Source: Piromyces finnis finn (taxonomy: Eukaryota > Fungi > Neocallimastigomycota). Taken from it: a stretch of DNA of 64,000 nt. This document shows, one piece after another, positions 29,160-36,143 of the stretch. The translations under genes and the position numbers were made by a program. Within the stretch, counting starts at the first letter, position 1; the number at the start of each line of letters is the position of its first letter. The notes beneath the pieces are model-generated. The model saw only the letters and a list, made by a program, of their open reading frames with translations. It did not search any database and was not told where the DNA came from. The stretch is from NCBI GenBank assembly GCA_002104945.1, contig MCFH01000055.1, positions 310,001 through 374,000 of the forward strand, written 5' to 3'.

Positions 29160-29513
29160 TTAATCAACAATATATCATGTGTATTTATGTATATATATAT
29201 ATTCATGAATCTTCATTTAAGAAAACATAAATTTATGAAAATTTGATTTATATTTTATTTTTTATTTATTGTAATTCTTTAGTATAAATTATTTTATTTT
29301 AATATTTACTATTTTATTATTTTATTATTATTATTATTTAATATCTAATTTATTTTATTTTAAATTTATGTGTTTTAGCAATTATTTCGGGGTTATTTAT
29401 TTTATATTATTTATATTTTTACATTATAAATAAAAATGTATGTATATGTAAAATTTTAATTCGTTTTTTTTAATAATGTTTCTAGTGTACTACTAGTTAA
29501 TATTTAATTACTT

Positions 29514-30284
29514 TTATTTTTCAAAAGCATCAATAATAGCTTGGTACATTTCCATTGCAATCTTTATTCTAACTCTATCCTCATCTGAATTTTCTGGTAA
29601 TTGTCTTTCAGCTTCAATTAAATTTTGTTTAGTGGCAGATAAATCAATATAATCCAATGGATAAGCTTCAGCAGCGGAAATACTCATTGATTTATCTGGA
29701 TTAATAATTGCAAAACCTCCACTTACTATTTTTTTAAAAAAACAATAAGTTATTAATTAGATAACAAATTTTTACTTTAAATTAATTACAATACAATATT
29801 ACCAATAAATTTTTTAATTTCTTTATTTTGTTCAACTTCAACAAGTCCACCAAGAATACGTTGAGCAAAAGCATCTTGTCCAGCTTTAATTTCAACAGGT
29901 CCTTTTTCTGTTGTAAATTTTACTCTTTCAACTTGTTCATTGTTGAAAAGGCTCTTTATAAAAATGACATTTCAAATTACATTTGTTAATATATTTTAAT
30001 TTTTCTTTATTCTTTATTATTATATTAATACATTAATAATTTGATTATTACTTTTTTTGGGGCAGAGAAATTTAAAGAAAATTGTTGTAAAGAGCGAGTA
30101 GCTATGACATGGGTAACTGTATATTTGATATATATAATTTTATTGATTAAAACAACAAATTAATTATTTTTTCAATAAAAAATGAAACTTTAATTACTAT
30201 GATAAATTAAGATGATATTTTATTACGGTTTGGTATTAATTTTGTTTTATTTAATAATTTTAAAGAACTGTTAAATAAAGCCAT
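29514..30284 (-). CDS. ATP16: Divergent F1-ATPase delta subunit (ATP16/ATP5F1D-like), 4 exons, with putative organellar presequence
   Basis: MALFNSSLKLLNKTKLIPNLTHVIATRS (basic, no acidic residues), then FSLNFSAP, GGLVEV, VSGGFAIINPDKSMSISAAEAYPLD and a C-terminal helical hairpin ending IKIAMEMYQAIIDAFEK. Confidence 0.82.
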
Positions 30285-30934
30285 TTGATGAAAGGATATT
30301 TGACTAATTTTATAGATAAAAATAAAAAAGGAAGTATATTATGAATTTATTATAAGAAATATTTTTTTTTAAAAAGATAGATGAATTTAATAGAAATTTA
30401 CTCTTTCATTTATTAAAGTTTATTACAATATATTAATAATTTTAAGTGAATTTATCCACATAATTTATATTTTCAAAAATTTTATTTTCGTTATTTAAAT
30501 TAATATATTATAGAGTTTTATAATATATAGATTTAATATTTTATCTTTCTTATGTAGAAGTAGAAAAAAAAATAACTATATAATAATTATAAAAATTTAA
30601 AAACAAAAACAAAAGCAAACACAGAAAAGGCAATTTAAATTTACTTTATATATGTTTTTAGTATTCTTGCTTCTTTTTTTAATAACTAAATATCGAAGCA
30701 ACATAAATTATAAATACTTAAATTATTAACGGACTATATATAACAAGTAAAATAAAAAAATGCAGATAAACAAAAATAACAATTATTTTCTTTATTTATC
30801 AAATTTATTATATTTTAAATTTTTATATAAACTGATCATATATTTTAAATATATACAAAATTATGAATACTATCAATGAAATTTTTTTCAGTAGTAGCTT
30901 TTGATAAACTTTAAATATAGAGTGCATAATTTAA

Positions 30935-33054
30935 TTATGAATTTCCCATAATTTGTGCTTTCTACAATTGAATATATATGTATAAAGTATATTATTATTT
31001 AATTATTATTAAATTAAAAATAAAAATAGCATTGATAATGCCATTTTAATTGATATAATAAACTTACTAATGCCATGATATTTTCTCGTTGATCTGGTGG
31101 AAGACTACTTAATTGGTCTGGAGTTAAACTCATTACTTGCATTAATAATTGCTGAAAATTTATTAATTAATTAATTAATTATTATTAACTATCAACTGTT
31201 TTATATTATATAGTATTAAAAATATTTAGTACTTACTTTTTGTTGTTCTTGTAACATATCACCACCTAAATTTATAATATTATTTTAATATTAATTTTTA
31301 TATATTAGAAAAATGTAATATATTCTTACTACCATTAAATTGAGACAAAGTCTTGTTAACAGCATTCATATTCATATTTTGATTATTCATTCCTTGATTC
31401 TGTGTCATATTGGACATTTGATTTTGTTGTGACATTTGTTGATTTTGCATTGAAGCATTTGAATCATTCATATGAACTTGTAATATTCTCTTCATTATAT
31501 TATTAATTATTGAATGTTAATTAATGCATTTATTCCATATATTTATAATTTATAAACTTAGTAAAAATATTAACAAACAAACAAAAAAATCTACCTGTAT
31601 TACATTTGGATCGACTATATTTAATGTTAATAGGGCCTTTATTTATATTATTAATTATAATTAAGCTTAAATAAGTATATAAACAAATGAATAAATTAAT
31701 TTATTAATATATTACTTGAAAAACTGCATATGATAATTGTGGATTCATTGTTAATAAGTTTCTTGCTGCAACTGGATTGGTTTCGATAAGTGTCTTGTGG
31801 TAAACATAAATTAAATATTAAATATAAAATTAATATTCATATTATTATTAAATTAGTATATTAACTTTATCTGTCATACTTTTATTTGTGACATTAATTC
31901 AAGTAATTCTCTTTGTGGAAGCATATTAACTGTATTTTGAATATTTTCTACAATAGATTGATTTTGTTGATTTTGATTTTGATTTTGTTGTACATTTTGT
32001 GAAGTATTTTGCATGTTATTTGTTCTATTATTAAAATTCTTTCTATTCTGATTATTAATAGTAAAAAATAATATTAGAATGAGAAAATAATAAAAAAAAG
32101 AAAATAATTGTTACAATTTCTGATTTTTTTAAAGGGTATGCTAATATGCTTAATAATTAAAAAAAATATAAAAAAATATTATTTTATATATTACGTCATC
32201 ATGTTGGAAATTATTATTTCCTGAATTGTTATTTACTCTATTACTATTATTATTAATACTATTATTGTTATTGTTATTATTATTATCATGATTATCTTCC
32301 TTGTCATTATCAGCATAATCAACTCTTAATTCTCTTCCCCCAACTTCATAGGAATTCAGTATTTATTTAAAATTATTTATATATAAATTTATAAATATAT
32401 CACAAAAAATAATATAGGGTAGGAAACAACTTAATTTTAAATGGTATTAAGCTTTCCTCCAGTTATCTAAATTATTATTATTAATAATGATAATTTATCT
32501 TATCATTATTAAGAATTTTAAATCTTTAATAAATTACATTATTAATAATAAGTTATTTCATTCTTGCCAAGAGAAATACTGATATTCTCAACATTTTAGG
32601 GAAACATTAATGATTAAATATAATTTTATAAAATATTCCCTTTATTATGTTTATAGTTTCTAACAGCACTTGCTGCAGTTTCAGCATCTTGATATTCACA
32701 AAAACCTATTTTTTATTGATGTATGATATTACTGAAATGAATTTTTATTGCTTTTAAAAAGTTTATATCATTTAATTTATATTTTAAAATACCATAACCA
32801 CGAGGTTTTCCTGATTCTCTATCAAACACTAATCTTTTTATTATTGTTACAATTGTTACAATATAATTGAATTAAATGAAAACGTTTTTTTTTTAAAAAA
32901 ATTATTAAATTTTTGAAGTTTGAAATTTATATTGACATTTTTGTCCTTTGTTTTAATTTTTAATAAGTACCTAAATGAAACTACAGGACCAACTTCCTTA
33001 AAAATTTCAGTAAGTTGCTCTTCAGTGTAATCATCTTGAAACAACAATAATAGC

Positions 33055-33087
<33 letters not shown>

Positions 33088-33310
33088 TTAATAAAAATAA
33101 TTTAATTTAAAAAATCGTGATAAATTGCTTAATTTTTATTCTTACATGGTATATTTCCAACTTTATTATATAATTATTATATAATTTGTATGGTAAAGAA
33201 AAAATTTGATATCATGAAAAGAGTGTTAAATATTATTTATAAAAACATTTATAAATATAGTATAGTATAATTATACCAAAAACCACTCTAGTTGAACGTT
33301 GATGACTCAT
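30935..33310 (-). CDS. CSTF2: Cleavage stimulation factor 64 kDa subunit (CstF-64/Rna15), multi-exon
   Basis: RRM: RVVFVGNIPYD...[26 protein letters not shown]...SAVRNLNSYEVGGRELRVD. Hinge: LPQRELLELMSQIK...NPQLSYAVFQALL. C-terminal LLMQVMSLTPDQLSSLPPDQRENI. Confidence 0.95.
32359..32654 (-). other. AT-AC intron in CSTF2
   Basis: AGA AAC T|ATAAACAT...AAATAAATAC|TG AAT TCC TAT. This is the only junction I found that restores the conserved RNLN in RRM helix 2. Confidence 0.85.
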
Positions 33311-33502
33311 TTTTATCTTTAGTAATTAAAATTTTATTTAGAGTGAATTTGAAATAAAAAAAAAATAAATACTTATAATTTATGTATTTAAAATATTAAT
33401 ATGAATAAATATGTAAAATATTAAAATTCATTTAATCTAACCTAACCCTAATGAAATTGTATTTTATATTAAAAATCTTTCTTTATTATACAATCATTTT
33501 AG

Positions 33503-33509
33503 CCAATCA
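33503..33509 (+). promoter_or_regulatory. CCAAT box in the divergent CSTF2/ArgRS promoter
   Basis: AGCCAATCA near the middle of the ~390-bp head-to-head interval. Confidence 0.5.
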
Positions 33510-33702
33510 TATATAAAATACAAAAATTTTTTTATGTATTAATTATTCTTTTTTTAAATATTTTTTTTTCTTTGCACAAATAAATAATAAAAAATATATA
33601 TATAATAAAAGTATTATAATATTTTTTTTATTTATAATTTACAATTATTGTTTTTATATATATATTTAAAATATATTCATAAAAGTGATAATTTAATACA
33701 AA

Positions 33703-36143
33703 ATGTTTTTAGTATTTGAACAATCTATTTTACCATACGCTGAAGTATTAACTTATCTTTTAGCTAATGTTGAAAAGAAATTAAAGGTTGGTTTAGCTGC
33801 TTATGATGCTGACAATTCAGTTGTTCTTCATATTTTACCAACCGAAGAAGATGCCAATAAAAAGATGTTAATTGGCAAATGCAGTGTTTCTAGATATTTC
33901 GCTAGAATTGCTTCAAAGCCATTATATTCTTCATTAACTTTACAAAATCAAATTATTGTTGATGATGTTTTAGATAATATTAGAAATGGTCGTGTTTCTG
34001 AAGTTTTAAAGGTTATTAATGCTGCAAATGGTAATTTCATTCTTGGTAATGATATTTCATTAGCTGATATTGTTTCCTATGATTTCTTTAAGGTTAAACC
34101 ACAAAAGAAATCCTCTGAAGCTTTCAACAATTGGTTTAATAAGATTGACTCCTTACCAGAAGCTGTTGAAACTGAAAAGATTATTAAAGATGCCCTCAGT
34201 ACTGCTGATGTTAATGATATTTTCAAGTTAAAGATTGCTGAACAACTTTCAGAATTATCTGGTGCTGAAAAGAAAGTTATTTTCAATTTATTAACACCAC
34301 CAGCTAAGCCAGAATATGGAGATTACTCAATCCCAGTTGCTAGATTACGTCTTCAAGGTAATCCAGTTGCCTTAGCTAAAGAATTCAGTGAAAAAGTAAA
34401 TATTATTTTTATTATATAATTTTTAAATAGTAATTAAATTTAAATCGAGTGATTATAGTAATGAAAAATATTTATATATGTTTACGTATACCTTTTTTAA
34501 TATAATATTAATATTAATTATTTTTCTTCGAATTTTTAATAATTTTACTTATAAATCAATATATAATATCAATATAAAAAAAATTAAACAATATCTCGTT
34601 ATTAAAATCCTAATAATCATAGTTCCAAACCAATGAATTCATTACTGCTACTAATTCAATTGGTATGTTCTTAAACTTCTCTATTTCTAGAGACACTCTT
34701 CGTGATGTTTTAATTCCAAGAGTTTTATCTTTAAAGGATAACTATGGTACTAACGCTACTGGTGCTGGTAAGGTTTCAGTTGTTGAATTCAGTAGTCCAA
34801 ACATTGCTAAACCATTCCATGCTGGTCATTTAAGAAGTACTATTATTGGTAACTTTGTACAAAATGTCTTAAAGGCCAACGGTCATAAAACTATTGGAAT
34901 TAACTACTTAGGTGATTGGGGTAAACAATATGGTTTATTAGCTGTTGGTTACAAGAAATATGGTAATGATGAAGAATTAGAAAAGGATCCAATTAAGCAT
35001 TTATTCCATGTATATGTTAATGTTAACAGAGATGCTTCTGAAAACCCAGCTGTTCATGATGAAGCTAGAGCTTACTTCAAAAAGATGGAAGATGGTGATG
35101 AAGAAGCTCTTGCTTTATGGTCTAAATTTAGAAGCTTATCTATTGTTAAGTACAAGGAAATTTACGCTCGTTTAAATGTCAATTTCGATGTTTACTCTGG
35201 TGAATCTATGTATTCTGAAGGTATGGTTGAAGTATTAAATCAATTAAAGGAATTAAATTTATTAGAATTATCCGAAGGTGCTCAAATTGTTAACTTAAAG
35301 CCATACAAACTTGGCGGTGCTATCATTGCTAAGACTGATGGTACTACTTTATACATTACTCGTGATATTGCTGCTGCTATTGAACGTTATCGTACTTACA
35401 AGTTCGATTCTATGTACTATATTGTTGGTGCTCAACAAGATCACCACTTCCGTCAATTATTCAAGATTCTTGAATTAATGGGTATGCCATGGGCTAGCCA
35501 ATGTCACCACATCAATTTCGGTTTAGTTAAGAGTAAGGATGGTCAAATGAGTACTCGTAAGGGTACTGTTGTCTTCTTAGAAGAAATTCTTGATGCCACT
35601 AAGAATGAAATGCATGATGTAATGAAGAAGAATGAAAACAAGTACAAGCAAATTGAAGATCCAGAATATGTTTCTGATGTTGTTGGTATGTCTGCTGTTA
35701 TGACTCAAGATATGATGGCTCGTCGTGTTAAGGATTACGAACTTGACTGGAACAGAATGTTATCTTTCGAAGGTGATACTGGACCATACTTACAATATGC
35801 TCACGCTCGTCTTTGTTCTATTGCTCGTAACCAAAGTCAATATGTTATTGACGAAAACACTGATATCTCTTGCTTAACTGAAAAGGAAGCTAAGGATCTT
35901 ATCAACATCATTTCTCAATACCCAGAATTAGTTAAGTCTATTCCAGCTCAATTAGAACCATGTATGGTTGTTTCATACTGTATGAAATTAGCTCATGCCG
36001 TTTCTCAAGCCTTAGAAGCCTTATGGGTCCAAGGTCAAGAAGAAAATGTTGCTAAGGCTAGATTAGCTTTATACGCCTGTGCAAGAATTACCTTACACAA
36101 TGCTTTAAGTATTTTAGGTATTCGTCCATTAGAAAAGATGTAA
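33703..36143 (+). CDS. RARS: Arginyl-tRNA synthetase with N-terminal GST-like domain, 2 exons
   Basis: Exons ~33703-34395 and 34624-36143. YGDYSIP; SSPNIAKPFHAGHLRSTIIGN; NYLGDWGKQ; KTDGTTLYITRD; MSTRKG; GDTGPYLQYAHARL. Confidence 0.96.

Follow-up and report, generated by a model that had tools for sequence, protein, structure and literature searches.

Is an intron that begins with AT and ends with AC, and that lacks the donor and the branch box of U12-type introns, truly spliced, and by which spliceosome? The question is raised by the gene for the 3'-end factor CstF-64/RNA15 of the gut fungus Piromyces finnis, which lies on the minus strand of a 64,000-nucleotide stretch (here called the window; GenBank assembly GCA_002104945.1, contig MCFH01000055.1, forward-strand positions 310,001 to 374,000; GC ~13-35%). 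A preliminary description of the window had placed an AT-AC intron inside the RNA recognition motif (RRM) of this gene and had proposed that it was either a relic minor intron now handled by the major spliceosome or the substrate of a minor spliceosome with rewired U11/U12 pairing. Here, we found that the intron is genuine, precisely excised and kept across three genera of gut fungi, and that its splice signals point to probable removal by the major spliceosome.

The AT-AC intron is genuine and precisely excised

On the minus strand, exon 5 ends with ...GCT GTT AGA AAC T (32655) and exon 6 starts with TG AAT TCC (32358), 7 nt downstream of a TAA that is in frame. When all GT/GC-AG and AT-AC pairs were enumerated, the pair 32654/32359 alone restored the RRM, and no other pair kept its helix 2 and strand 4. 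Every GT/GC-AG alternative removed at least five RRM residues, and all other AT-AC pairs lost or inserted RRM residues; both groups were rejected. A TA-TA pair shifted by 1 nt also predicts N-L from protein logic and was ruled out by the cDNAs of two sister genera.

The transcript evidence came from natural cDNAs of Neocallimastix lanati (locus L005, cDNA L015) and Anaeromyces robustus (genome locus L017, RNA-seq contig L018). A word search with exon 6 found a 60-residue open reading frame on 24 JGI metagenome contigs, and L005 proved to be the orthologous locus of another species; its exon 5 shows five synonymous differences from P. finnis, and its intron still starts with ATAAACATAC and ends with AAAATAC. 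A metagenome scan further yielded a fully spliced cDNA of this species (L015, 1225 nt) with the junction ...GTAAGAAACT/TGAATTCC, whose coding region matched the named proteins of N. lanati at 100%, P. finnis (BCR36DRAFT_586827) at 79% and A. robustus at 75%; this natural cDNA was used for protein matching, and single exons were used for the Pfam and word searches. The A. robustus intron is 335 nt long (aagaaact/ATAAACATAAAA...AAATAAATAC/tgaattcc), and the orthologous intron of both sister genera reads ATAAACATA...AAATAC. In addition, the N. lanati, A. robustus and P. finnis proteins all contain the spliced junction, the public P. finnis protein reading RNLNSYEV.

When the boundaries were slid by -3 to +3 nt with a script, only AT-AC reproduced cDNAs L015 and L018, and AT-AC excision was accepted because no other boundary reproduced the cDNAs of both sister genera. 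Sequencing error was rejected since A1 and C-1 are both conserved in three genera despite synonymous exon changes, and a pseudogene was rejected on the basis of this conservation and the transcripts. These results collectively demonstrate that the AT-AC intron of CstF-64 is genuine, precisely excised and kept across three genera. The preliminary description was thus exact in its coordinates for the intron, and its arguments that GT-AG alternatives damage the RRM and that sequencing errors are unlikely both held.

A transcript-like contig of a third gut-fungus species (L016, Ga0138317_1029563) carries ...GATTAAATAC before exon 6. It retains intron 6 and has lost all later introns, and its upstream end is joined to the beginning of an antisense open reading frame (288 aa, no Pfam match); the contig represents either an assembly chimera or an RNA whose processing was incomplete.

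Annotated proteins mapped on genomic loci placed a phase-1 ATAGGTC...ATAC intron at the same N/L site in two Basidiobolus species, and the other loci surveyed had no intron there (Table 1). The preliminary description had suggested looking for a U12 intron at this phase-1 position in orthologues; none was found in the sampled lineages (nine loci mapped plus the gut fungi), which have at this site either no intron or the same AT-AC intron of non-U12 type. The older VF/VG and SFR/L introns are still present in several species that have no N/L intron. The AT-AC intron is the longest of the CstF-64 gene in every species carrying it. Because the Basidiobolus protein (43% to the gut-fungus protein) is no closer to it than are the Mucor or chytrid proteins, the simplest reading would be common descent with repeated loss.

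Splice signals, minor spliceosome and conserved pairing in the intron

Apart from +1, the donor follows the ordinary pattern of its lineage (ATAAAC compared with the local GTAAAN/GTAAGA; ATAGGT in Basidiobolus), as the preliminary description had noted in calling it unlike the U12 consensus and similar to local U2 donors. Scored against the U1-complementary consensus CAG/GTAAGTAT, it agrees in 5 of 11 positions, as many as the weakest GT intron of the gene; the range for the GT introns compared in register is 5-10. The Basidiobolus ATAGGT fits this generic consensus better than ATAAAC does. A tract of U7-U8 precedes the AC in Basidiobolus. A U12 donor of the form /RTATCCTT was not found at the 5' splice site, which reads ATAAACAT in P. 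finnis and the two sister genera and ATAGGTC in Basidiobolus. Likewise, neither an ATATCC donor nor TCCTTAAC occurs anywhere in the AT-AC intron, the nearest sequence being TTTCCTACC, 61 nt from the AC; the earlier statement that no U12 branch box lies near the AC was therefore borne out. No TTCCTTRAC branch box was found ~10-26 nt from the 3' splice site either, and the nearest candidate, UUUCCUACC, lies within a hairpin (H2, described below); its distance to the AC is 60-64 nt in the gut fungi, compared with 22-25 nt in Basidiobolus, although the distance rule may be relaxed in this genome.

Judged by these signals, the intron is probably a U2-type 'AT-AC type II' intron removed by the major spliceosome. 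The A at +1 and the C at the last position would stand in for the usual G...G pair needed for the second catalytic step. In U2-type splicing, A1...C-1 can replace G1...G-1 for this step, and a change of either A1 or C-1 alone is deleterious, so that the pair is locked in. The AT-AC pair could have persisted for so long because such single reversions are deleterious.

The preliminary description had also called for a search for the minor snRNAs, and all four gave candidates in the genome. U12 (66.6 bits, with the canonical branch-binding box GAGUAAGGA) and U6atac (52.1 bits) scored over their cut-offs, and U11 (38.2 bits) and U4atac (49.2 bits) fell just under theirs. The U6atac candidate (L002:1501-1649; G000:C112:211500-211648) has AGCCGAGAGACAG in place of the AAAGGAGAGAAGG found in all known U6atac; the altered box is the one that pairs with the U12-type donor, and canonical ATATCCTT donors are nevertheless in use in the genome. 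The U11 candidate (L003:1501-1615; G000:C152:317514-317628) starts with AAGAAAAGUUUU, compared with the consensus AAAAAGGGCU, and a SNORD14-like box C/D RNA (52 bits, cut-off 64) lies ~550 nt downstream of it on the opposite strand. Previous work reported minor introns in P. finnis and abundant ones in B. meristosporus (n = 249; PMC10639083), and showed that P. finnis and Basidiobolus genomes retain U11, U12, U4atac and U6atac (Larue & Roy 2023, PMC10639083).

Furthermore, the pattern RTATCCTT...TTCCTTRAC recovered genuine-looking AT-AC introns in the genome, and the reversed control gave zero matches. These canonical U12 introns have the donor ATATCCTTT and the branch TTCCTTAAC, and the AC joins open reading frames in four of them, which are 86-120 nt long; TTCCTTAAC lies 10-12 nt from the AC in three, 23 nt in a fourth and 28 nt in a fifth. 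The minor machinery of this genome thus reads canonical signals, and the idea of rewired U11/U12 pairing put forward in the preliminary description is therefore not supported, U12 itself keeping its canonical branch-binding box. False U12-like matches to the pattern were produced by a dispersed repeat present at ~27 places (e.g. C1:484805-484883), an identical 79-nt stretch ATATCCTTGAGTTCCTTC...TTTTCCTTGAC that probably lies antisense to the coding part of a transposon.

We then compared the introns of P. finnis and A. robustus. The other 11 introns of the gene were 37-55% identical, with 19-23 identities in their best 30-column windows, and the AT-AC intron was 65% identical, with a best window of 29/30, equal to the exons. 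Exon-level conserved blocks therefore occur in the AT-AC intron only, among the introns of the gene. Two predicted hairpins, H1 and H2, occur in all five species. For H1 of P. finnis, AUGUU pairs with +4 to +8 and UUCCCU pairs with AGGGAA at intron positions 14-19. The three gut fungi share the AACAU/AUGUU stem and an inner stem that varies with compensation, and Basidiobolus has GGUC(AAAC...)/(...GUUU)GACC, which gives four compensatory outer pairs between the clades (AACA/UGUU to GGUC/GACC). H1 was predicted in four of five minimum free energy (MFE) folds and by RNAalifold, and in each of the five species the partner of +4 is the base that directly precedes a GAGAW box. This last comparison was anchored and made by script across clades; five-way MAFFT alignments misaligned the clades because their loop lengths differ.

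The strands of H2 are identical in all five species, at the distances from the AC given above for UUUCCUACC, and H2 is unique in the 56-Mb genome, the duplicate contig C41 aside. The tail after H2 contains no AG in any of the five species; three have no earlier AC and two have one extra AC, and the 59-nt tail of P. finnis is free of AG and of any other AC. An nhmmer search of the Neocallimastigomycota core against other fungal loci did not find the Basidiobolus core, and the by-eye core alignment beyond GAGAA-N3-CAG-Y-A is therefore unproven. Rfam returned no family at gathering score on the introns of P. finnis and both Basidiobolus species (best 11-22 bits), and no U6/U6atac gene or pseudogene was recognized in them (16 bits against a gathering score of 33 in P. 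finnis, no match in Basidiobolus). The canonical U12 introns of the genome contained neither the GAGA box nor the donor hairpin, so that this layout does not extend to the AT-AC introns of the genome in general. In one canonical U12 intron with AT-AC ends (L032; G000:C13:201990-202075), the donor AUAUCCU is perfectly complementary to an internal AGGAUGU located 24 nt further downstream; nothing comparable was seen in three others.

By pairing +4 to +8 with the bases directly 5' of the GAGAW box, and by enclosing a run of pyrimidines in a helix from which an A bulges out, H1 and H2 may respectively present or gate a very weak donor and the branch region. The AT-AC intron could thereby be a slow, rate-limiting and regulatable step in the expression of a core 3'-end factor.

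Several observations weigh against removal by the major spliceosome with the help of these hairpins. AT-AC termini are typical of U12 introns. The donor would pair with U1 over only three contiguous bases, H1 would mask +4 to +8 from both U1 and U6, and reading of the P. finnis sequence between H2 and the AC revealed no obvious YURAY branch motif. Thermodynamically, the hairpins reach modest z-scores (+0.15 to -2.4), and support for the structure comes from comparison, not from thermodynamics. The Basidiobolus boundaries come from annotation and carry a 1-nt ambiguity between AT-AC and CA-TA, with a C flanking both ends. In addition, UUUCCUACC bears a faint likeness to the U12 branch box and lies 22-25 nt from the AC in Basidiobolus, and both lineages that keep the intron also keep the minor spliceosome (PMC10639083). 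The last two points would suit an intron on which the minor (U12-dependent) spliceosome still acts, using a degenerate donor and UUUCCUACC as the branch, with the hairpins compensating for lost U11/U6atac pairing; so would its AT-AC ends, phase 1 and deep conservation, and the altered 5' splice site-binding boxes of the U6atac and U11 candidates (AGCCGAGAGA; AAGAAAAG). However, the U12 positions under the strongest constraint (+4 to +7, TCCT) are not matched by ATAAACAT or ATAGGTC, other introns of the genome do use canonical ATATCCTTT donors, and UUUCCUACC, locked in H2, forms by reading only ~4 bp with the U12 of the genome (GUAAGGAU). Moreover, +4 to +7 changed freely between clades and were compensated in cis, which argues against a conserved snRNA reader, and we consider action of the minor spliceosome unlikely. 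It is very doubtful that the elements are cis surrogates of snRNA elements, as a reading that recalls the domain architecture of group II introns would have it. A U6/U6atac-like strand (the complement of +4 to +8, then GAGAA, with (N4)AGCA in Basidiobolus) would be combined with a U2/U12-like purine strand, GGAGGAA, whose helix with the pyrimidines of the branch region leaves an adenosine bulged. Presentation of splice site and branch would then be partly self-contained, which would account for donor bases that co-vary with a partner inside the intron and with no snRNA.

Other explanations concern why the blocks are conserved. Whichever spliceosome acts, they could form a regulatory device in which splicing of the slow AT-AC intron competes with its retention or with a poly(A) site inside it that CstF-64 itself would sense, resembling the intronic poly(A) autoregulation known for CstF-77/su(f). 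Exon-level conservation in this intron only is consistent with such a device, and by reading the sequence upstream of GAGAW contains hexamers similar to AAUAAA and stretches rich in GU (UGUUG; GUUUGUCUUUGUUUG in Basidiobolus); read-through into the intron meets an in-frame TAA after 10 codons, and the third-species transcript L016, if partly processed, keeps intron 6 and the end of the AT-AC intron with later introns gone. Yet at 16% GC chance alone should produce motifs rich in A or in GU, the positions of the hexamers are not conserved, no truncated transcript was seen and L016 looks chimeric, so we hold this device to be quite improbable; a feedback on the dosage of CstF-64 through such competition is speculative. 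Conserved structured blocks in an intron that is longer than any other of the gene in every species might also reflect a host for an independent small RNA, snoRNA-like or another stable intron-derived RNA. No Rfam family reached threshold on any intron, no C/D or H/ACA boxes were seen by reading, the Neocallimastigomycota core was not detected in Basidiobolus by nhmmer, and the conserved pairing includes the splice-site nucleotides themselves, all of which make a hosted RNA most unlikely. A poison exon was rejected by reading (no conserved flanking sites), as was splicing of the IRE1 or tRNA-endonuclease type (no CNGNNGN loops or bulge-helix-bulge). Taken together, these comparisons leave a U2-type AT-AC intron as the probable reading.

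Gene structure and locus

The gene shows the CstF-64/RNA15 architecture, with an N-terminal RRM, a hinge and a C-terminal helix bundle in both the exons and the orthologous cDNA. RRM_1, CSTF2_hinge (34 bits) and CSTF_C (44 bits) were matched exon by exon in P. finnis, and the N. lanati cDNA gave RRM_1 at 4.7e-24, the hinge at 8.9e-24 and CSTF_C at 8.7e-14 (Pfam). In P. finnis, introns 1-4 are GT-AG introns of 87-137 nt, and the AT-AC intron is the fifth. The public P. finnis protein (P0004) equals the exon translation except in the N-terminal region of a missed 15-nt micro-exon: it reads VVFGIIILYDY where the sister-genus cDNAs and the present model encode the RNP2 motif via the micro-exon, which has a match in A. 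robustus at L017:1642-1656. The public annotation is thus correct at the AT-AC intron, yet misses the micro-exon. The features are collected in Table 1.

Table 1. Features of the CstF-64/RNA15 gene in the window and state of the N/L site at the other loci surveyed.
Feature	Position or locus	Strand	Description
CstF-64/RNA15 orthologue	30935..33310	-	13 exons; public model Piromyces finnis BCR36DRAFT_586827
Micro-exon	33146..33160	-	15 nt, VGNIP of RNP2; absent from public P. finnis model
Exon 5	32655..32705	-	17 residues + T
AT-AC intron	32359..32654	-	296 nt, phase 1, inside RRM; ATAAACATAA...AAATAAATAC
5' splice site	32647..32654	-	ATAAACAT; +4..+8 (AACAU) form the predicted 5' strand of H1
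H1, 3' strand	32590..32603	-	UUCCCU AAA AUGUU; predicted by MFE folds and RNAalifold
GAGAA box	32585..32589	-	directly 3' of H1; GAGAU in two sister genera, GAGAA in Basidiobolus
Conserved block	32550..32605	-	~55 nt, near-invariant in alignments of three genera; small hairpin UAUUUCUCUUGGCAAGAAUGAAAUA
Hairpin H2	32418..32460	-	GGAGGAA(AGCUUAAU...AUUAAGUUG)UUUCCU-A-CC, bulged A; 61 nt from 3' splice site
3' splice site	32359..32360	-	AC
Exon 6	32195..32358	-	coding; contains an Asn-rich linker
Basidiobolus meristosporus	L022		intron, 185 nt, phase 1, ATAGGTC...ATAC
Basidiobolus ranarum	L027		intron, 214 nt, phase 1, ATAGGTC...ATAC
Spizellomyces	L020		no intron at N/L site
Phlyctochytrium	L021		no intron at N/L site
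Mucor	L024		no intron at N/L site
Podila	L025		no intron at N/L site
Paraglomus	L026		no intron at N/L site
Paraphysoderma	L029		no intron at N/L site
Nematostella	L028		no intron at N/L site

P. finnis (window 29500-34400) and A. robustus (L017) share the gene order arginyl-tRNA synthetase / CstF-64 / ATP-synthase delta-epsilon N-terminal domain protein, and the neighbour of CstF-64 in chytrids and Mucoromycota is a TMEM208/SND2 gene. The end of the 29.5-kb contig C41 (L030; G000:C41:26000-29516) duplicates the CstF-64 locus with many single-base indels; a paralogue was rejected, as this copy looks like an unpolished redundant contig.

Comparison with known systems

AT-AC introns without U12 signals are among the rarest classes, at ~1 in 10^4-10^5 introns in animals. 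No published description of the CstF-64 intron was found in the literature on AT-AC/U2-type introns in fungi or on CSTF2 with U12-type introns; the class is already known, and what appears new is how deeply this intron is conserved in fungi and how its donor takes part in pairing. The intron is transcript-verified in fungi and common to two very distant fungal lineages, and it therefore offers a natural, long-lived test case for the first/last-nucleotide rule and the second step of splicing. The co-variation of donor-proximal bases with a partner abutting GAGA gives a concrete hypothesis of how a very weak donor may be presented or gated, and since the intron sits in the gene of a core cleavage/polyadenylation factor, its splicing kinetics could set the dosage of that factor.

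The intron shares the register of the U6 ACAGAGA box and of U6atac AAGGAGAGA, in that the complement of +4 to +8 is followed by GAGA(A/U), and the Basidiobolus GAGAA-N4-AGCA matches the spacing in the U6/U6atac snRNAs. Unlike these snRNAs, the element lies in cis inside the intron, and AGC is AGU in gut fungi; the likeness is one of resemblance, not of membership. Libri/Rosbash in 1995 and Meyer et al. in 2011 reportedly described yeast introns in which helices join the 5' splice site and the branch site or position the 3' splice site. Such structured introns resemble the present one in having conserved intramolecular helices near the splice signals of a long intron, but their helices do not involve the +4 to +8 donor bases and are not combined with an AT-AC pair. 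The U12-type AT-AC introns of P. finnis and Basidiobolus share with it the AT-AC ends, the non-zero phase and deep positional conservation (PMC10639083), whereas the CstF-64 intron lacks ATATCCTT and TTCCTTAAC, has a U-rich tract before the AC in Basidiobolus and is two to three times longer than the canonical U12 introns of P. finnis.

A further likeness is to the U2-type AT-AC introns of human SCN4A/SCN5A (Wu & Krainer; surveyed by Sheth et al. 2006, PMC1557818), members of a class counted at 15 in human, 6 in mouse, 3 in fly and 0 in worm and Arabidopsis (PMC1557818). They too have AT...AC ends, a donor that is U2-like except at +1, no U12 donor or branch box and borders conserved over long times, in a class that is extremely rare (PMC1557818). 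The SCN4A/SCN5A introns were proven by experiment, whereas type II status of the CstF-64 intron is a probable assignment from its sequence; the latter also has a weaker donor (ATAAAC), conserved hairpins predicted to pair donor-proximal bases in cis, and a place in the gene of a fungal 3'-end factor.

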